A stretch of DNA of 62,967 nucleotides, the filler included, from Klebsormidium nitens (lineage: Eukaryota > Plantae > Klebsormidiophyceae): assembly GCA_000708835.1 (NCBI GenBank). It is 4 parts of 4 records of this genome, joined end to end, with 100 filler letters (N's around TTAATTAATTAA, not from the genome) between each part and the next. Parts side by side here need not be neighbours in the genome. Positions count along the whole stretch, not along the records: positions 57,115 to 62,967 come from DF238255.1; 3 more parts are not named here. The stretch is one strand, 5' to 3'. Position numbers and translations under genes: made by a program. The notes below the pieces were generated by a model. That model was given only the letters and a program-made list of their open reading frames with translations, did not search any database and was not told the origin of the DNA. Numbering within the stretch: position 1 is the stretch's first letter; each line of letters starts with the position of its first letter. Below are positions 4,001-62,967 of the stretch, piece after piece.

Positions 4001-5959
4001 GCCGGCCTTCCGTTTCCGTCTCTTCCTTTTCTTCTTAGGTCCGAATTTTGAAATGAGGGGAGAAACGATGTCAGCGTGACGAGAGGCAGCCTGTGCTTTG
4101 CTTCCTCCATCTGCTCCGAGTAACCGATTTTTTACTCCTAATACTAAAGTCAAGTGTCTGCTCTGTGTCTCCTTTCTCGGATCTGTCCACTGATTTGTCC
4201 CAACCTTCCTCCGAGCACACACCTCTTAACAGAACGGTACCGCAGTTGTTGTCCCGGCCTGCTTTATGGGCAGTCAGCCCCCGGAACTTAATGCCCCACG
4301 AGCTTTCTAGCTTTCTGGGTTCATACGCACCGAGCAGCTGTCTCCGGTTGCGACCTTCGATTGACTTCCAATAACTCGGTTGAATGTATGGGGGCCTGCT
4401 GGTCTCCAATCCCTGCTGCCCGCATTCCCTCCCTTTCCTTTTTGAGTCGTTTGTTTGATGTTACGGGAACCCTTTCTTCTGCCAGGTACGTTCATGTACA
4501 TGGCACCCGAGGTGATCCGGAGCGACAAGTACGATCAGCGCTGCGATGTGTACAGGTGAGCGCCACCGCATCGCGTCTTCAAGGCTCTCGAGCTTCGACT
4601 GCAGCACCTGACCTTTTGGTGCTCACAAAGTAAATCAAAGGTAGAGGCCTTTCTTTGAGCTGTCCTTACGGGCGCTGTCTGTCAACACCGCTCAATGGCG
4701 ACTGCTTGGGCAGATACTATCTCCCGGCCGCAATCGATTAACGGCGTGGACCCACGCTTGGCTAGGGCTTGGGTCGAGCGTCGTTTAACCTGTGAGGGTT
4801 GATCGACCTTACTCGGGTAAGCTCCTTTAAGTCCGATCTGAGATCGTTCATCTGTGTTTGCAGCTTCGGCGTCCTGCTGAACGAGGTGCTGTGCGGTTAC
4901 CCCCCCTTCATCGAGGTCCGCCAAGCGCCGTTCCAGGTAAGCGGCGGCCAAACCCGTCTATTGATTCATGTGTCGTAAAATCCACGGTACTGAGAATACC
5001 CGGAGTTAAACTGTGCCTAATGGAGAAGCTGGGCCGTCCGATAGCGGAAAGTGGTTGATCAAGAAACGCCCAGTCTCGCTTCCAACTTTGGCCAGGAAGC
5101 CAGGTTGTCGAAATGCGCGGCAAACCATTGAATCTACGCGTCTGCTGACCTTTCCACCGCCTCTTGGAGCCTAGGCAAAGTTCAGGCGTTTGGTTTCTGG
5201 ACCTATATTCAGTCCCGTCATCGAGCCTTCGAAGACTTCTTCCCTCCCTTCTCTTCGACGGTAGATTTCGGTTCTGCTCGTTTCTTCGTTCTGCTCTGTT
5301 CGTCGCCGAGTTGCTTCGCTCCGCCATACCGTTCCGCGATTCGCGGGCAAGTGGCCGCAGTCTGTTCGAACCACGAAAACAGTGCGTTTCTGCACCTTGA
5401 CTTCCTTTGGACCTTCCCGATTGCATCAATTGAACATCCATGCAAGCTTCAACATTGATCACGATCCTCTCACGTTACAGAGGGCCTTGCTTCATCTACA
5501 AAGGCCCAAGTTGATTGTGAACCCTTCAAACCCTTTGTTCCTGAAAGTCTCTTATGGTAAAAGCTTTACTCCGCCAGACATCCCTGTGAAACATTCAGAA
5601 TCATGACTCACCTTCTTCAATTGTTCATATTTCTTTAAAACCTTCGACACTTGAGAATCAGACTCCTAACCCCTTCCTTTCGTTTCCAGATTGCCGAAGC
5701 CGTCGTCAAGGCGGGGATCCGCCCCTTCCTGGTTAAGACCGACGCGGACCCCCGGGTCATAGACCTGATCAAGATGTGCTGGACCCAGGATCCAGATGGA
5801 CGGCCCCCAATGAGCCACGTCACCACCACCCTGCGCGAGATCCTTGCTGACGTGCACAAGGGAAAGAAGAGCCGCAGCGGAAAAGTCAGCGACGGGGCCG
5901 GCAACGAAAGCCGGTCCTCCGTGATGTCACGGCTTTTCAAGACCAAGTCAGGGACGTGA
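1044..5959 (+). CDS. Raf-like (TKL / MAPKKK group C-type) Ser/Thr/Tyr protein kinase, multi-exon
   Basis: Spliced exons reconstruct the kinase subdomains: LGKGSTATVY, VAVK, IIHR|DLKPSN, DFG, GTFMYMAPE, DVYS|FG, CW..DP..RP. The exons have GT-AG borders and the stop is at 5959. The ATG at 1044 and the early exon structure are less certain. Confidence 0.9.
3613..3785. mobile_element. Possible Stowaway/Tc1-mariner-type MITE in a kinase intron
   Basis: TA at 3611-12 and 3786-87 flank an imperfect 11-bp TIR (AAGAGGGTGTC vs reverse complement AAGTGGGCGTC, 9/11). A perfect 16-bp palindrome TGCGGATGCATCCGCA lies at 3624-3639. Confidence 0.3.
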
Positions 5960-8497
5960 AACAACTATTGAGCCGTGCATCTTTACCCGCCATACTAGTT
6001 GGGCTTCAATGCGGATCCCGTCTAACGTCTATTGTAAAGGGGACTTGAACGGGAGCAAGGGAGAGTGGGGTTGCCTGTTCGAGGGCCGATTGATATGCTA
6101 ACTGATTGAGCTACAGTAATCGTAGCGTGAGCGCCGCATACGGGGCTGTATGAAGCGCTGAGGAAAATAAGACTGCAGCCTCTGAGAAAGTCGAGAAGAA
6201 TGCAAAAAGGGCAAAAATGATACACGATGGGCTGCTCGACTTGGTTTCAGCAAAATGTGCAAGAGGAGGAGCGAGCAGCCTTCAGCGTCAAGTCTTGCTT
6301 ATTGAGTTTTGAGCTCTAGGGAAATGGATCCCAGATTTGGCGCCCGCCCTAGCTAGACTCAAAGCCGTATGCAAGTGAGCGAGCATAGCGACGTTTTAGT
6401 ATTGTACAGTGTTTGCTTACAGCACCAAGCGATCGGACACTTCATAGCCTAGCAGAGCTATGGCAGGACCAATAGAAAGATGCGGTACGTGTGTGTACAG
6501 ACCAAAGATCCATCGGAGGCCGAAAGTGATTTGGCCCGAACCAGTAACGCTCCTGATTGCGAAAGTATAGCTATTGAAAACGCTCACACAAATCTCTTTT
6601 GGTATGTGAAGTTTGAACGTTGGATTGTGACCATGCGGAATTTCTGCATTTAGTCGCAAAGTCTGTACTGATGTTACGAGGTCCTCATAGCTTTATTGAG
6701 TACTGGTACGATGGTGGCGGCAGTCTTTTCGAACAAATGATGCTCAGACGAAGCTAGCTCGTACATGGCCGGGTGGTTGCACCGGGCGCGCGAGCGGCCG
6801 GCCAACTTGAATAGCAGATACTACGAGCTTCGTCCACCCGATCCAAGCCGAGTGCAGCGGCTTTTTCATGACAAACATGTACGTGTGCAATTGGCCTCAT
6901 GCTAGCTGGAGCGTTTATACATGGATGCGACAGTCGCGCGAGCGCGAGTTTCAGCATGCGTCCTATAGATAAAAGCTCATGTACCAGTAGAAGTTGATTG
7001 TACAAGAGCTTGGTGAAGATCTTATAGCAAAGCATGTGCTATAAGATATATGCGTATGTGTCCATGAGTGTGTCGCGCGACCGTCAGTAGCTTAGTGCGG
7101 GCGATATCCACGTGTGAATCTAAGCATGCTAGCTTATATAGATGTCCCATGGATAATTCATGTTGCATGCATATGGCAGGTTGTCTTCCGACCTTACGCG
7201 CGCGTATACAATTTCGGAGTGCCAGAAGCCCTGCTGAGCGGGCCATGTACTCTTGCATAGACCGATTGTACTCGGCTGGTTGCGCGCCAGTTATGCTCAT
7301 CGCCTGTTAAGGGTCACATGAAGCTGCAAATACAGTCATCAAGCCAGCTTGCATATGTACCCATGGGTTCATGATAGGCGCGCGCATGTCATTACAAATC
7401 CAAGGGACACGCAGCGTATTAAGGTTGGATCACACCCATGGCTTGATTTAGCAACACAGACAAGGTGACAGTGATCTGACGTCCTCAACGACGAATGCAC
7501 TTTTCCCCAATGCTTCGAAGGGCTTACATACACTAAGCTTGGTCTCCCATCCAGGCGCATATTGTGCATGATCGAATTGCAACCATAAAATCTTTCCCGA
7601 CCTCCCAAGGCCTTTGCCTGTCTAACTCTAGAGACGTCCAAAATCAAAGCCAGGCGATGCTCCTGGACCTTCTGCAAAGGTACTCCTAGAAAGTTTTCAA
7701 TCGAAGCGCTTTTGCTGCAAGGGTTCCGAGCCGTCCAACCTCACGGGCTGCAACCGAAGCAGGGTTGTATCAGCAGGATATCTCCTTCGAATAAACCGCC
7801 AGCAGCAATGGTATCCTACATGCATCCGGCAGTCGATGACGAGAATCCGTCCATCAATGACAAGCAAGGTATGTCCAAAAGAGATCCAGACTTATAACTC
7901 CCAGGGTTTGACAAGGCAGCCCGTCAAGCTACAGACAATCAGCAAACGTCCAACACACATCCGACACGACTTTGCCAAAAATAACTTGGTGGTACCTTAC
8001 CTCCTGGACAGACTCCTCGATGGCGAGCGGGACGCAGCCCGAACTGGGCTCCGGGAGCGGCTGCATATCGGACGAGCACGAATCAATCATGGCCTCTAGC
8101 TTTGAAGATATCATTCAGAGAATGAAAACTTGCTGCTGCCAGAAAGAGTTAGGGAACCGAGACTGCTGAGACTTGAATAGCGGAGATGCCAAATGGTACC
8201 ACACACCGTCAATGTGCGTTCTGACCACATGAAGAGCAGCTGCTAGCACTTCATTTTCCAAAACACGTAGTTGAAAGGTACCTCCTCTTGCAACTCTCTC
8301 GCCTCGATCGGTCTGACGTGTTGACACGCCTGAATCAGCGGAGACGCTATGACAAGCATCCGTTGCTACGAGACACATGAAGGCTTAAGACCTTGTACAA
8401 AGACCCACTTCTGCATTCGTTGTTTGGGCGTATAGTAGAGAGAAGGGAACAGTCAGCCAAACAAACGCAAGATCAATGAAGGTGGGAATTTGCGAAC

Positions 8498-57114: not shown

Positions 57115-57216
57115 CTGGATTGATGTGGCGATTGAAGAGTTTCTGGGCGTCCACCACGAAGTACCTAGGTTTCTGATCTGCACTCTACTCTGCACTGGAA
57201 GGTGGATTCTACGTGG

Positions 57217-57876
57217 TCAATGCCAGTCCATCGCGAGAGCTATCTTAGGGAACTGCTCCTTCATGATGCCCTTGACATTCCATGCTATCTCCTTATGCTC
57301 GTCTTGTGTACCGTTGCCGCACCTCAGATCCACGTAATGTATCCAATCCCTCGCGTTCATGGTCATGTACAGCTTAGTCTGCGTGGACATGGGAAGGACG
57401 AAACGGGCGCACTCTTTCGCTATGCCCTTCTCTAGTGCCTGCGTATATGTGGCGTATGAATCCTTCCACAGCCTATCCTGCTCTGCCACGAACCAGGCCT
57501 TCACGTCCGGCGGCAGGTCGTCCACGGACGACTGCCTGTTCTTGGGATCCTGGCTCCTGGCTTCGTAAACCACGTTCGCATCGACCTTTGCATACCTGGT
57601 GCTGAATTGCTGAAAAGTTGCCGACCTGTGCCTCAGGATCTGCTCCGCTATGGCTCTGCTGGTGGTTATCTCCACCGTCATGGAGGCGGTCTCGAAGACC
57701 GACCAGTGACGATTCTTGATACAATAACGCAACAGCCTGGCACCGCTCTCGTAATTCCTCTGGTTCTGGGGATTGGAAACCCGTGCGGCGTGCACTATGA
57801 TGTCCTCGGGACCTAGCCCCTCCAGTTCTCCCGCGCCTCTGCTGAGCGCCACCAGCTTCACCTCGCAAGCTGCCAT
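57217..57876 (-). CDS. thyX: Flavin-dependent thymidylate synthase ThyX, intronless (219 aa from ATG 57876)
   Basis: AARVS, HWSVFE, SRAIAEQILRHRSATFQQFSTRY (RHRX7S signature), KECARFVLP, RDWIHYVDLR and TQDEH. Confidence 0.95.
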   Translation of the reverse strand: MAACEVKLVALSRGAGELEGLGPEDIIVHAARVSNPQNQRNYESGARLLRYCIKNRHWSVFETASMTVEITTSRAIAEQILRHRSATFQQFSTRYAKVDANVVYEARSQDPKNRQSSVDDLPPDVKAWFVAEQDRLWKDSYATYTQALEKGIAKECARFVLPMSTQTKLYMTMNARDWIHYVDLRCGNGTQDEHKEIAWNVKGIMKEQFPKIALAMDWH

Positions 57877-57925
57877 CTTTCTATGTGGACTACAATAATA
57901 CAAGTTCAGTGCCTAAACCGACATA

Positions 57926-58252
57926 TCACTTTCGCAGCATGTTCAGGAAGATCTCGATCATCTCTCCGTGACCCTCCAAGGGGTAGACTCCACCGACCGT
58001 GTGGGCTAGTCGCCAAGAGGTGTGTATCGCCAAGTCTCGGACTCTGGATTCCATACTCAATCTAGGTATGGTGAGAGCCAGCTGCGAGTTCAGTCTACGC
58101 AGACGTTCTCCGTTATCGTCCTTGCAGAGCTCCATCTTGGCGATGATCTCCAGCAGCACCCACACCCGATCTTCCACCGTGGACTCGGGAGACAGAGTCG
58201 AGAATCTCCTTTGGAGCTCGCCCAGGACCTCGGCAGTCGTCCGAAACCACAT
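57926..58252 (-). CDS. Hypothetical 108-aa protein between Fanzor and thyX
   Basis: ATG-initiated intronless ORF, co-oriented and tightly packed with thyX. No family recognised. Confidence 0.45.
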   Translation of the reverse strand: MWFRTTAEVLGELQRRFSTLSPESTVEDRVWVLLEIIAKMELCKDDNGERLRRLNSQLALTIPRLSMESRVRDLAIHTSWRLAHTVGGVYPLEGHGEMIEIFLNMLRK

Positions 58253-58267
58253 CCTTGTCTGACGCTA

Positions 58268-58470
58268 AGGAAATTATTACCATTTTCGCCCAAACTGTCG
58301 CCCGTACCGGGCGCTTGTTCGAACGGAAAATGAATAATAATACCGGATTGAGTCCATACGAGTACGGACTGGTACTGGCTATCCGCGAACCGCCGGGTTA
58401 TGAAGCCCGGTATCCTCGAACAATCCTTATATAGTGGCCGACCGGCAGAACTCCACCGGCCTTGCACGGC
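58268..58470 (-). ncRNA. Putative Fanzor omegaRNA scaffold overlapping the ORF 3' end
   Basis: Dense cluster of stems directly 3' of the nuclease stop: 58393-97/58406-10, 58351-58/58363-70, 58299-303/58309-13, 58273-87/58326-41 and long-range 58315-22/58416-23. Confidence 0.7.
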
Positions 58471-60262
58471 CTTCCAGCCGCAGCCTAAGCAGCCTCAGGA
58501 TATTGCGGGCGGCGTTCACGTCTCGGTTCACCGTCATGCCATTACAGCCACTGTTTCTGCAGTGGAGCACACTGTGAACTTTGACGGTCTTCACCGCCCC
58601 ATCCTTGCACCGCTTCTCCGAGTACTGGTTGCGCAGCTGCATCTTGCAATCGAAGTGGAGCTTGCTGGTCCTGAACTCGTCCATCGAGACCACCCTGCAA
58701 TGCTTGCGGAGCTCTCGCTCCAGCCGCTTCACGGGCCCAGAAGGAGACCCCCTGATGATGCCTCCGGAGTCCTTGTTCGACCAGTCTCCGAAGCCCACAA
58801 CCGTCTTGCAACCCACTCGCCTTGTTATGGCTTTGCAGAGCGCATACAGCTTCTTCTGCGCCGAGATGTACCGCTTGAACTTGAGCCCTCTGAATCCCTG
58901 CCTCATGTGGTAGACGAGCAACATGTCCAGCCTGGGCAGAATGAAGTGCAGGTAAGCGAGGAACTTGGTGCTCTCCGAGGTCTTCTTGGTGGGCATATTG
59001 CGGATAGCCTCGAGCACCTCCGGGCTCTTATCGTACCACCGCTTGATCTTGGCGTTGCTGTGCTTGTACTTGGCGTCGCCATAAAACTCTCGGGTAGAGC
59101 ACTTCAGCTTCTCTCCTTCCTCATTGACCATGACAAAGAGGTCTCGCCTGCCAGGGTCTAGGCCCCACAGCTCCTCTTCTCCCGTGAGGTCAGGGAGCGT
59201 TGCTTCGCCTGAGGCTTGCTTGGGCTTGGGTTTCCTCAACACGATGCACACGGCCTTTCCGTCCGTGAGGATCTCACCTGCAAACTTGCGGTTGCATGTC
59301 TCAAACTTAGCAATGTCGAAGAGGTCCCTCCAGTAGTCGTCTGCCACCTTCCTGAACTGAGCTCCCGAGGCCGGAAGCTCAACCCCTCCCCTCTTGAGCA
59401 GCCCATACAGTCCGTTAGTGCACATCTTGAGGTGATTGCACTCGAAGCCCCTCTTCGTAGGCAGCAGGCTGAAGAGCCTCAGCTGCTTGCCATTCTTCAG
59501 CTCCTCTTCCGTCAGGGGGTGATGAGACTCCATGTAGCGCAGGAACATGTATTGCATCGGCATGAGTATGTGAGGGGAGGAGTCCGCCCTGCCAGTGGTG
59601 GCTTTGGGAAGCATGGCTCGATACCTCAATACTAGTTGGTCGTCGCCTTCATACTCATCGGCGAACATGCCTCTCATCTTTGCGTAGCACGAAGGGCCGT
59701 CTAGTGAGTACTTGTGCTTCAGGTAGCGCTTGAAGCGCTTGTAGAAGTTTGTGGCGATTGAATTCTTGGTGCATGTAGCCATCTGAAGACTGGCGTTCTG
59801 ATACCAGCCGGAAGAGAGATGCTCGGAATCTGGAGGCACGTAGTTAGCAGGGCGTGATGCCAGGTAGAGCTCTACGGTCTCCCTGAGGTAGAGGTCTTTG
59901 ACGGAGCTCTTCTGCCTGCCAGCCACGCTGACGGCGGAGAGGCAGTTGTAGAAGAAGGGCTGATCCAGAGGTGGCACCTCACGGCCCAACTCACACATCC
60001 GTAGTACATGAAGGTTAGCAAGGATGTAGGCTTCACAGATAGCCTTATTCACTTCCTTGAGCACGCTCTCCAGAGGGAGGGCCCTGGCAGCCTCCTTGTA
60101 GAAGCTGTTCAGGCTGGTCATGACCACGGTGCATTCGGTCTCTTTGTTCCTCAGGGCCCGGAGCTTGACGTCCTCTCGGGTCCTAGGCTCTTTGAAGAGC
60201 TTGCTCACGTAGGCCAGGCATTCATGGTGGAGAGCGACGTCGGGGGGCTTCTTTGGTGGCAT
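58427..60262 (-). CDS. Fanzor (Fanzor1-like) TnpB-derived RuvC endonuclease, intronless, 611 aa from ATG 60262
   Basis: RuvC-I WGLDPGRRDL, VGFGDWS, shifted RuvC-II VSMDEFRTSK, Zn-finger HFDC...CRNSGC and RuvC-III NRDVNAARNI. The N-terminus MPPKKP is NLS-like. No internal stops. Confidence 0.92.
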   Translation of the reverse strand: MPPKKPPDVALHHECLAYVSKLFKEPRTREDVKLRALRNKETECTVVMTSLNSFYKEAARALPLESVLKEVNKAICEAYILANLHVLRMCELGREVPPLDQPFFYNCLSAVSVAGRQKSSVKDLYLRETVELYLASRPANYVPPDSEHLSSGWYQNASLQMATCTKNSIATNFYKRFKRYLKHKYSLDGPSCYAKMRGMFADEYEGDDQLVLRYRAMLPKATTGRADSSPHILMPMQYMFLRYMESHHPLTEEELKNGKQLRLFSLLPTKRGFECNHLKMCTNGLYGLLKRGGVELPASGAQFRKVADDYWRDLFDIAKFETCNRKFAGEILTDGKAVCIVLRKPKPKQASGEATLPDLTGEEELWGLDPGRRDLFVMVNEEGEKLKCSTREFYGDAKYKHSNAKIKRWYDKSPEVLEAIRNMPTKKTSESTKFLAYLHFILPRLDMLLVYHMRQGFRGLKFKRYISAQKKLYALCKAITRRVGCKTVVGFGDWSNKDSGGIIRGSPSGPVKRLERELRKHCRVVSMDEFRTSKLHFDCKMQLRNQYSEKRCKDGAVKTVKVHSVLHCRNSGCNGMTVNRDVNAARNILRLLRLRLEGRARPVEFCRSATI

Positions 60263-60509
60263 TAGACCACCCCTATGCGTCTCCTTAGGAAAATAGATCT
60301 CGGGAATTTTACGCACGGCCCAGGTTATGTATACGAGCCTAGCGCTTATAATGTAGGACTCTCGTACACATCAACGAAACAGGTGATTATATGCAACAAT
60401 CGTTTTCCATTTGCGTCCAACCGGGCGGTTTCGCGCGACACTTTCGACGAAAACGGTAATAAATCGATCCATGCGCCCGAAGTCGAACTTTCGGACGGTA
60501 TGCTCGCAG

Positions 60510-60705
60510 TTTTTTCACGCCCGAAACCGACCTCCCGAGAAATTTCTTTCGGGCGCCACCTCTCGCGGAAATATACTCGGAGGGTTTTCACGCCCGAAAC
60601 CGACCGCCCGAGAAATTTCTTTCGGGTGCCACCTTTCGCAAAAATATGCCCGCAGTTTTTCGGCGCCCGAAACCGACCGCCCGAGAAGTTTCTTTCGGGC
60701 GCCTT
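60510..60705. repeat. 73-bp tandem repeat x3, each with a 9-bp inverted pair
   Basis: CGCCCGAAACCGAC..CCCGAGAA(A/G)TTTCTTTCGGG(C/T)GCC starts at 60518, 60591 and 60664. CGCCCGAAA / TTTCGGGCG pair within each unit. Degenerate copies lie near 60474 and 60743. Confidence 0.9.
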
Positions 60706-60773
60706 TCAAGCAGTATGCTTCGCGGTATGCCTCAAGCGAAAGCCAGAGAAGTACTTTTCGGACGGAGATCGCT

Positions 60774-60787
60774 CTATAAAAAGAGGT
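60774..60787 (+). promoter_or_regulatory. Candidate TATA box
   Basis: CTATAAAAAGAGGT lies just after the 73-bp repeats and before a pyrimidine-rich tract. The identical 14-mer is on the minus strand at 40333-40346. Confidence 0.45.
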
Positions 60788-61576
60788 CCCTCTCGTTCTC
60801 ATTCTCAAAAACGCACTTGGCCTCCCCCTTCCCAACAGCTCGCAAGCAACTCCCTCGCACACAGCATCCTTCTGCCTATCTGCCTTTTCAGCAGCGGCAC
60901 AGCTTAGCCGCTTCCCTCTTTTCCCAACAGCACCCTATTCTCCCACAGCTCGCTTCCCTTCCGTCCACTCACCAGCCAGCAGCACCTCATACTCGCATAG
61001 CTCGCTTCCTCCAACACCAGCAGCAACGAGGCCAAGTCGCGTCAGATAGTCACGCCGGCCGGCCTTTTGCCTTGTCCTTGTTTTCCTTTTTGCTGGTCTG
61101 CGCAGACCTCTCTTTTCTTCTCCGTGTCTCTGCAAGCCTGGCCAGGCTGTCGTGTCATGCTGCTCTTCGGCAGCTTTTTTTCTTGCCGTGTCTTAGCTGG
61201 GCTCCCGCTTCTTTGCGGCTCCCCTCCACTGTTTCTGTCTTTCGCTGGCCTCTCGGGCCTTGTAGCTGCCTCGTGCAGTTCCCTTCCGAGAAGTATCAAG
61301 GTGAGTATTAGTGAAGTAGGATAAATTGAAGTTACTCTATGATCGGCTTCTCGTTTGCTTTGCAAAATATTTGCATAGAAATGTTCCCTCTGTTGCTCTC
61401 CAATCTCGTTGTTTGCAGAACCCTCGCATCGACTACCTCCTGAGGCTCCGCTCGCATCCGTTAGCTGGCCTCTCGGCCCTTGCAGCTGCCTTGTGCCGCT
61501 CCACTCCTACCAATCAGATAAGTTCCCTCTCTTGCTCTCCAAACTTCTGATGTTTGCAGCATCCTGCCTCCTTGAG

Positions 61577-61780
61577 GCTCCGCTCGCACCCGTCGGGCAG
61601 GGTGCCGATAAGAGCGAGCATTTGTGGCTCTGTGGGTAGTGCCGTTTGTCCACGGTACGCATACCACTCTGCCTGTAGGCTCCGCTCGCACCCGTCGGGC
61701 AGGGTGCCCATAAGAGCGAGCACTTGTGGCTCTGTGGGTAGTGCCGTTTGTCCACGGTACGCATACCACTCTGCCTTTTC
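61577..61780 (+). repeat. 102-bp tandem duplication
   Basis: GCTCCGCTCGCACCCGTCGGGCAGGGTGCC...CATACCACTCTGCC starts at 61577 and 61679. Confidence 0.9.
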
Positions 61781-62344
61781 ACTCCGTCTGACGATGTTGA
61801 AAAGCTGTCCGAGCTACTGGTCACTTTTATCTCCACTCGCAGGTCCGAGTCATCGAGCCTTTTGACGAGCGGACGCGACTGGAGATCACTACCATGTGCC
61901 TCGTCTACGATCAGGGGCTCGACACGCCGTCTATGGTCCAGGTTTGAATCAAACAGAGGCAAGTCTCGACTGACTCTTCGAATGCCTTCGCTGCTGAGTC
62001 ATATGCACAGGGCGTTTCGTTCCTTCGTAGCAGCAATGACTTGTGGTCAGAAAATTCCCCTGCCGCCTTTGTCACAAGAGTAACATGTTTCTTTTTCTTC
62101 TTACAGGATAAAATTCGCCGCATGGAGGAGTCTTCGTTTGTGACTCTGAGTCCTTTTTCTGGGCGTGTGCAATGGATTTTTCTACGTGACGTGATTCTGG
62201 GTTCTTTTCTGGGCATGTGGAATGATTTTTTGTGTGACTTTTCTTCGACTCTTTGGCTGTCTGTCTGTCTTTCTGTCTCTGTCGAGTCGGTCGGTCGGTC
62301 GGTCCGTCGAGTCCAGTCCTGTCCAGTCCTGTCCAGTCGGTCAG

Positions 62345-62655
62345 TCCCACCAACTATACACACCCTACACTAGACACCCTACACTATACACACCCCTCAC
62401 CCTCTTACCCACTCCAAATACCCTACTGCCTTACCCTTCCCTCCCACACACCCTACTTCTTAACCCTTTCCTCCTACATACCCTACTACCCTTACCTATC
62501 CCTCACACCCTAATACTACCCTTACCTATCCCTCACACCCTAATACTACCCTTACCTATCCCTCACACCCTATACTACCCTTACGTATCCCTCGCACCCC
62601 ACTGCCTAATTACCTCCCTCACACCACCCTATACTACCCTTACCTATCCCTCAAA
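62345..62655. repeat. Nearly G-free C/A/T minisatellite including a 30-bp unit x3
   Basis: CTTACCTATCCCTCACACCCTAATACTACC starts at 62491, 62521 and 62551 (last copy diverged), embedded in related CCCTA-type repeats. Confidence 0.9.
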
Positions 62656-62669
62656 CACACCCGCAGTAG

Positions 62670-62722
62670 AACCACAGATGGCTGCTGCGACCCGCAGCTG
62701 GGGTTCGATTCCCCATGTGGTT
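62670..62722 (+). other. tRNA-like fold lacking a D-arm
   Basis: 7-bp AACCACA/TGTGGTT stem, 6-bp hairpin GCTGCG/CGCAGC, and a perfect T-arm TGGGG-TTCGATT-CCCCA directly abutting the 3' acceptor strand. Confidence 0.4.
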
Positions 62723-62967
62723 GGACGATGTGGCACATCGAAATATTGCCGGTTGAGATTACTGGTTGTGAGTAGGTTTCCTAGTATACTTTCTTCTCTA
62801 GATCATGAAGACTACAACCAGCAACCGGCAAGGTTGGGGAACTTAAGGGAGTTCCGAGATCGATCTGTACAATCTGAGATAGATCAGATCGATCACCCCT
62901 TTTCTTAGGGCCTCTGAAAAATGGTCCGGTTGCCGGTTGCTGGATGGTGACGTGGCACCTCGAAAAG

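Follow-up and report, generated by a model that had tools for sequence, protein, structure and literature searches.

In the 62,967-nucleotide stretch of Klebsormidium nitens DNA analyzed here (hereafter the window), the minus-strand segment running from 58426 to 58274 is very probably the omegaRNA (fRNA) scaffold of a KnFNuc-type Fanzor1, carried on a 2.19-kb non-autonomous element, probably of the Tc1/mariner-IS630 kind. The segment lies on the strand of the nuclease gene and at the end of its open reading frame (ORF), stops at the right end of the transposon, and holds a structure with compensatory changes. A first-pass annotation of the sequence had read this region as the cognate guide scaffold of the neighboring protein, a reading borne out by its place on the ORF strand, its termination at the right end, its conservation and its covariation across Fanzor loci, as well as by RNA sequencing of the ribonucleoprotein (RNP) from the same species (Jiang et al., 2023; PMC10530073). 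The position, strand, element ends, conservation, covariation of three stems (S2, S3, and S4) and strand asymmetry were obtained in the present analysis, RNP formation, the TAM and cleavage are taken from the literature on the K. nitens enzyme, and we infer the guide length, the homing role and a candidate pseudoknot (P1).

The host gene is a minus-strand ORF at 60316–58427, in the piece of the window that spans 57115–62967. Its mechanically assigned start is a GTG at 60316; read from the ATG at 60262, the Fanzor1 (TnpB-like) ORF (58427–60262, minus strand) encodes 611 amino acids and ends with a TAA stop codon at 58429–58427. A word search returned the K. nitens protein KFL_016210020, which is 96% identical over its full length, other K. 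nitens copies with 86–93% identity and, among green algae, oomycetes and metagenome contigs, over 100 relatives. Pfam placed the Cas12f1-like TNB domain (PF07282) on the ORF with an E-value of 7e-5 and 23.3 bits, below the curated cut-off of 26.3 bits. In an alignment of 30 homologues, residues D369, E529, and D581 were invariant, and they make up the expected RuvC triad. The sole PDB match of the protein was SpuFz1 (8GKH; E-value 4.4e-10, residues 264–609). With the invariant RuvC triad, the sub-threshold TNB domain and the likeness to SpuFz1, and given that KnFNuc is classed as a Fanzor1, the product is assigned to the Fanzor1 nucleases. Single-protein locus scans of viral and metagenome contigs gave no matches, profile scans turned up no relative above 62% identity, and a GTDB scan yielded two distant relatives alone (34–36% identity), with a different right end. 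Another K. nitens copy (L002; DF237931, 445–3121) has its ORF interrupted by an insertion of ~650 bp and loses homology at the position that matches 58438 of the window, just before the stop codon; hence the scaffold and the right end are missing from this copy, which is a degenerate Fanzor locus without its guide RNA.

The ends of the element are marked by 31-nt inverted repeats that are 84% complementary to each other, at 58274–58304 (right end) and 60432–60462 (left end), giving an element of 2,189 bp. On the minus strand, it starts with TTATTACC at 60462 and ends with ...GGTAATAA at 58274. With L001, a further K. nitens copy, and with L003 and L004, metagenome copies whose proteins are ~80% identical, nucleotide homology spans the ORF and stops at this same ...GGTAATAA end, with unrelated flanks beyond; the flanks of all copies diverge from 58273 onward. 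More broadly, the end motif G(T/G)(A/G)ATAA is common to 13 related loci, to all of which homology stops at that point. In ten more distant loci the conserved region closes with the same terminal motif, which in L064 and L065 takes the variant form GGTGATAA. A left end like that of the window is also found in L004, L060, L062, and L061, and the left ends from five loci begin (T/C/G)-TA-TTACC, as would be expected if a TA duplication bordered a TTACC... repeat. Any of T, C and G can occupy the outermost of these left-end positions (it differs, for example, in L062 and L061), and the right-end base that follows the TA is A in 14 of 14 loci. The window element has ...GAT|T-TA-TTACC at its left end, and without the insertion the site would presumably consist of T-TA and then the flank of the right end, in line with the TTA reported as the TAM.

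A gene or gene fragment for a DDE_3 transposase (PF13358; Tc1/mariner-IS630 type) sits beside the Fanzor gene in L058, L061, and L062, whose Fanzor proteins are ~52–58% identical. In L062, whose element runs from a left end at 1420 to a right end at 4459, it is enclosed by the same inverted repeats and sits on the left-end side of the Fanzor gene. The window element shares with the Tc1/mariner-IS630 DDE elements that carry Fanzor1 the terminal inverted repeats, and the TA at both ends fits a TA duplication. It differs from the relatives with DDE_3 in that no transposase gene was found within it, and it is therefore non-autonomous. With the half that covers the terminal hairpin, the covariance model described below partially matched a site ~1.6 kb downstream of the L061 Fanzor element (6092–6156, 15.7 bits; ending ...GGGCGTTAGGGGTAATA), which could represent either a miniature element or a solo right end.

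Several features were recorded around the element. An intact ThyX gene (flavin-dependent thymidylate synthase, PF02511; E-value 8e-51) occupies 57217–57903 on the minus strand, ~370 bp past the right end, and its nearest relatives are metagenome proteins (84% and 70%). The metagenome contigs that carry L003 and L004 hold giant-virus-like genes (TFIIS, mRNA cap methyltransferase, ribonucleotide reductase, and patatin). From these contigs and the relatives of ThyX, the DNA flanking the element may be giant-virus-derived. A 108-aa ORF at 57926–58252 (minus strand, start 58252), just past the proposed guide, matched nothing in Pfam and, by tblastn, none of the fetched loci. Immediately outward of the left end, at 60499–60717, lie three tandem 73-nt units that are 75–88% alike, each with an internal inverted repeat (GCCCGAAA...TTTCGGGC). 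Farther out are a 102-nt tandem duplication (61570–61773; 96% alike), a run of ~30-nt CT-rich repeats (62462–62656), a 17-nt inverted repeat (62815–62946; 94% complementary), and a sub-threshold mascRNA-like Rfam match (62671–62721; 23.8 bits against a threshold of 42.5), at which ARAGORN found no tRNA.

Within the limits that can be set for it, the scaffold occupies 58274–58426 on the same (minus) strand as the ORF, and its 5' part may reach into the ORF. With the stop codon at 58429–58427, the region that the first-pass annotation described as overlapping and following the stop codon does indeed overlap and follow the ORF end. The minus strand of 58260–58500 folds with a free energy of -99.6 kcal/mol (z = -3.66; 0 of 200 shuffles equally stable), compared to a z of -0.95 for the plus strand, indicating that the structure goes beyond chance and is strand-specific. 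A covariance model built on S2, S3, and S4 gave a single match in the piece (58268–58431, minus strand, 118 bits) and weak matches (E-values 0.02–0.84) at four Fanzor genes left out of its training, in each case at the 3' end. Rfam returned no match in the scaffold at an E-value of 1 or below, and DNA-pattern scans of IMG/VR for the terminal hairpin returned chance matches alone (covariance-model E-values 0.03–0.7). Hairpins are also seen inside the ORF at 58470–58434, where coding constraint confounds covariation.

Covariation was measured on 12 loci with 40–96% protein identity, aligned with the structure-blind program MAFFT over the terminal ~120–175 nt of the element and the adjoining 6 nt. 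Across these loci the three nested stems together were paired in 88.9% of alignment cells, with 10 pairs changed on both sides and 0 of 500 shuffles as good; when the partners were slid, 29–52% of cells were paired. S2 is a three-part hairpin on the minus strand at 58379–58423 (58423–58417 with 58385–58379, 58415–58412 with 58390–58387, and 58410–58406 with 58397–58393), and 7 of its 15 consensus pairs changed on both sides while 80–85% of cells remained paired. S3 (58342–58379, minus strand) joins 58379–58375 with 58346–58342; it was paired in 93% of cells and changed on both sides in 2 of 5 pairs, and one of its column pairs (75–106) is G-C in five sequences, A-U in three and U-A in two. The window copy carries an A·C mismatch in S3 (58376/58345), a position that is G-C in close copies. 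An extra hairpin in the S3 loop (58370–58363 with 58358–58351) is present in the window, L001, and L003 only, and absent from the other loci. S4, the terminal hairpin (58274–58340, minus strand), pairs 58340–58333 with 58281–58274, its 3' arm being the right-end inverted repeat. In the window it is prolonged by two inner extensions (58332–58326 with 58287–58281, and 58324–58317 with 58295–58288) and an apical hairpin (58313–58308 with 58304–58299). S4 was paired in 98% of cells, with 1 of 8 pairs changed on both sides. Compensatory variants of S4 occur as UUAUUACA/UGUAAUAA in L044, which is within the alignment, and as UUAUCACC/GGUGAUAA in L064 and L065, both of which are outside it.

We considered whether these stems might act at the level of DNA or be generic, as subterminal repeats bound by the DDE transposase or as hairpins of a 3'-UTR or terminator, instead of forming a guide scaffold. 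The identity of the S4 3' arm with the terminal inverted repeat, the resemblance of the S4 5' arm to the left-end repeat and the DDE_3 gene in related elements speak for such a role, and the covariation of S4 by itself could also mirror co-evolving transposase sites. However, strong covariation is also seen in S2 and S3, neither of which falls within the inverted repeat. In addition, the paired cells hold 53 G·U against 5 A·C pairs, a one-strand signature which argues that the molecule is an RNA read in the Fanzor sense and not a set of DNA hairpins or an antisense RNA. Published RNP sequencing also reports that the K. nitens enzyme binds RNA from this region (PMC10530073). The stems persist both in a non-coding context, as in the window type with its stop upstream of S2, and inside a variable C-terminal tail, as in the L062 type with its stop within S4. 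We consider a DNA-level or generic origin very unlikely, and the guide scaffold remains our reading of the segment.

Within this scaffold, the first-pass annotation had placed a pseudoknot formed by the 8-bp pairing of TTGTTCGA (58315–58322) with TCGAACAA (58416–58423), crossing the long terminal stem (58273–58287 with 58326–58341). These complements are present at those coordinates, as are those of a second proposed crossing pair, GGATTG (58345–58350) with CAATCC (58421–58426) and ATACC (58340–58344) with GGTAT (58409–58413). The 8-bp pair is perfect in the window copy; yet a perfect 8-bp inverted repeat turns up in 24% of dinucleotide shuffles of 58268–58470, so that such a complement is unremarkable alone. 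Over the 12 loci it was paired in 56.4% of cells compared to a shuffled mean of 55.6%, similar to slid partners, and it has two mismatches in L001 and three in L003, none of them compensated. Moreover, its 5' strand belongs to the covarying S2, and its 3' strand (58315–58322, minus strand) lies in the inner extension of S4. We therefore rejected the pair, and a functional pseudoknot of this topology appears highly improbable. Of the second crossing pair, the GGATTG/CAATCC core covaries and was retained, whereas ATACC/GGTAT was set aside as an independent helix (76.7% paired compared to 72.5% in shuffles), its excess coming mostly from the conserved CC/GG of S2 and S3.

The retained core constitutes the candidate pseudoknot P1. 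Its 5' strand (58421–58424, minus strand; AUUG, extendable to 58426) would pair with a 3' strand at 58347–58350 (minus strand; CAAU), which lies in the S3 loop directly 5' of the S3 3' strand, a location that would make P1 an H-type pseudoknot with S3. In the window, the duplex GGAUUG/CAAUCC has a predicted energy of -7.8 kcal/mol. Over the alignment, P1 (columns 10–13 with 101–104) was paired in 83% of cells, compared to 62% in shuffles (0 of 500 as good) and 20–33% with slid partners. Its middle pair (11–103) is U-A in three sequences, G-C in five and C-G in two, with an A-U pair that never varies on one side and a nearly invariant U-A on the other. The strands read AUUG/CAAU in the window and L001, AUUA/UAAU in L003, AGU/ACU in L004, L062, L061, and L047, AGUG/CACU in L058, and ACUG/CAGU in L059 and L060; the L003 form carries an extra compensatory change, G-C to A-U. 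By inspection, three Watson-Crick types, none of them in fewer than two sequences, occur at only four column pairs; the center of P1 is one of these, with two others in S2/S3.

These observations have to be weighed against a purely nested scaffold made of S2, S3, and S4 with no pseudoknot, in which the covariation of P1 arose by chance in a small alignment. P1 comprises 3–4 bp, and about two independent double substitutions lie behind its covariation. Formation of its outer pairs would come at the expense of the first two pairs of S2, and columns 12–13 can pair within S2 instead. A blind scan of all 4-bp helices ranked it 12th, amid spurious candidates from which it does not clearly stand out. 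It is absent in L044 and L065 and shifted in L064. Furthermore, the SpuFz1 omegaRNA is reported to have no pseudoknot (Saito et al., 2023; PMC10432273), and PMC10711439 speaks of a pseudoknot absent from, or lost in, the guide RNAs (reRNAs) of Fanzor1. Against a nested-only fold stand the three Watson-Crick types of pair 11–103, the drop in pairing once the partners of P1 are slid, and the additional compensatory change in L003. On balance, we regard the covariation support for P1 as moderate; that P1 is a real H-type pseudoknot with S3 has an even chance or slightly better judging from the alignment, and a nested-only scaffold is a serious possibility to which we give somewhat less than even weight. 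Going by the same two papers, the premise of the first-pass annotation, that omegaRNAs contain a pseudoknot, is inaccurate for Fanzor1, the type found here; it holds for TnpB and Fanzor2.

A second scaffold family was seen in L036, L042, L037, L010, L045, and L066, which are Fanzor relatives with ~35% identity whose elements end ...GGCGTTTTAAATCTTCAAGGGTGTAAA. Here too a short hairpin directly precedes the 5' arm of a terminal helix, the 3' arm of which is the element end (UUACAC/GUGUAA), and a conserved AAAGU/ACUUU complement would cross that helix. An analogue of P1 was sought in the second family ending GGGTGTAAA (Fanzor relatives, 35% identity) but could not be mapped cleanly.

From these features, the following course of events can be proposed. 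The RNA would arise from the Fanzor message or be co-transcribed with it, in the same orientation as the gene, would begin at or before the stop codon, and would run to the right end of the transposon. It would fold as S2, S3, and the long terminal S4, possibly together with P1. The ~20 nt of flank after 58274 would act as the guide, putatively 58254–58273 on the minus strand, 3' of the scaffold. The length of this segment is assumed, and its start would be 58274 if the TA duplication is counted as scaffold, as the target duplication is in PMC10711439. Fanzor together with this RNA would then cut DNA that matches the flank next to TTA, that is, the unoccupied insertion site. Such cutting would be analogous to the homing of TnpB, a role that we infer from the literature.

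The closest described system is KnFNuc itself, an intron-free K. nitens Fanzor1 of which each genome carries five copies (Jiang et al., 2023; PMC10530073). According to that report, the RNA sequenced from the KnFNuc RNP comes from 3' non-coding sequence directly next to the right end of the transposon, the right-end flank provides the guide, the TAM is TTA, and cleavage was assayed in a cell-free system. The window locus agrees with the KnFNuc fRNA in genus or species, protein family, a 3' non-coding RNA at the right end, the lack of introns and the multicopy state, and its left-end TTA matches the published TAM. Judging from the species and the 96% protein identity, the RNA probably corresponds to the published KnFNuc RNA. 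The covariation-based stem model and P1 were derived here and are absent from the main text of PMC10530073. SpuFz1 of Spizellomyces punctatus (8GKH) is the only solved homologue of the protein, and its guide RNA is likewise encoded at the right end; in contrast to the SpuFz1 omegaRNA, reported without a pseudoknot, the candidate P1 covaries here.

With the omegaRNAs of TnpB and Fanzor2 (ISDra2 TnpB, ApmFz2, and IS607 TnpB), the present scaffold has in common its origin at the right end, a guide derived from the flank and a tertiary pairing with a hairpin loop, the last of these here through the candidate P1. In ApmFz2 (PMC11832414) and IS607 TnpB (PMC10711439), the 4–5 nt before the guide pair with the 5' region or an apical loop. 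In the window, in contrast, the guide-adjacent nucleotides 58281–58274 belong to the nested S4, where they face 58340–58333 in the pairing that held in nearly all cells, and P1 would lie ~75–150 nt upstream of the guide. The canonical TnpB/Fanzor2 pseudoknot was thus not found in the scaffold at 58274–58426, and P1, if real, would be a different, previously unremarked one.

Since Jiang et al. described the K. nitens Fanzor1 and its fRNA in 2023, the kind of object that the first-pass annotation proposed was already established for this species, and the locus adds no new kind of biology. It does illustrate that reading raw sequence can pick out the guide scaffold of a eukaryotic RNA-guided nuclease. 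The covariation-based secondary-structure model for this Fanzor1 clade could guide scaffold minimisation in genome editing, and P1 offers a testable candidate pseudoknot in an RNA class reported to have none. Whether the Fanzor1 guide RNAs of Klebsormidium, Coccomyxa and giant-virus-like metagenomes share a non-canonical H-type pseudoknot, between the S3 loop and the four nucleotides 5' of S2, is in our estimation an evenly balanced question. If they do, this pairing would contradict the statement that Fanzor1 omegaRNAs have lost the pseudoknot, and it would put the pseudoknot of this clade away from the guide-adjacent position that it takes in TnpB and Fanzor2.
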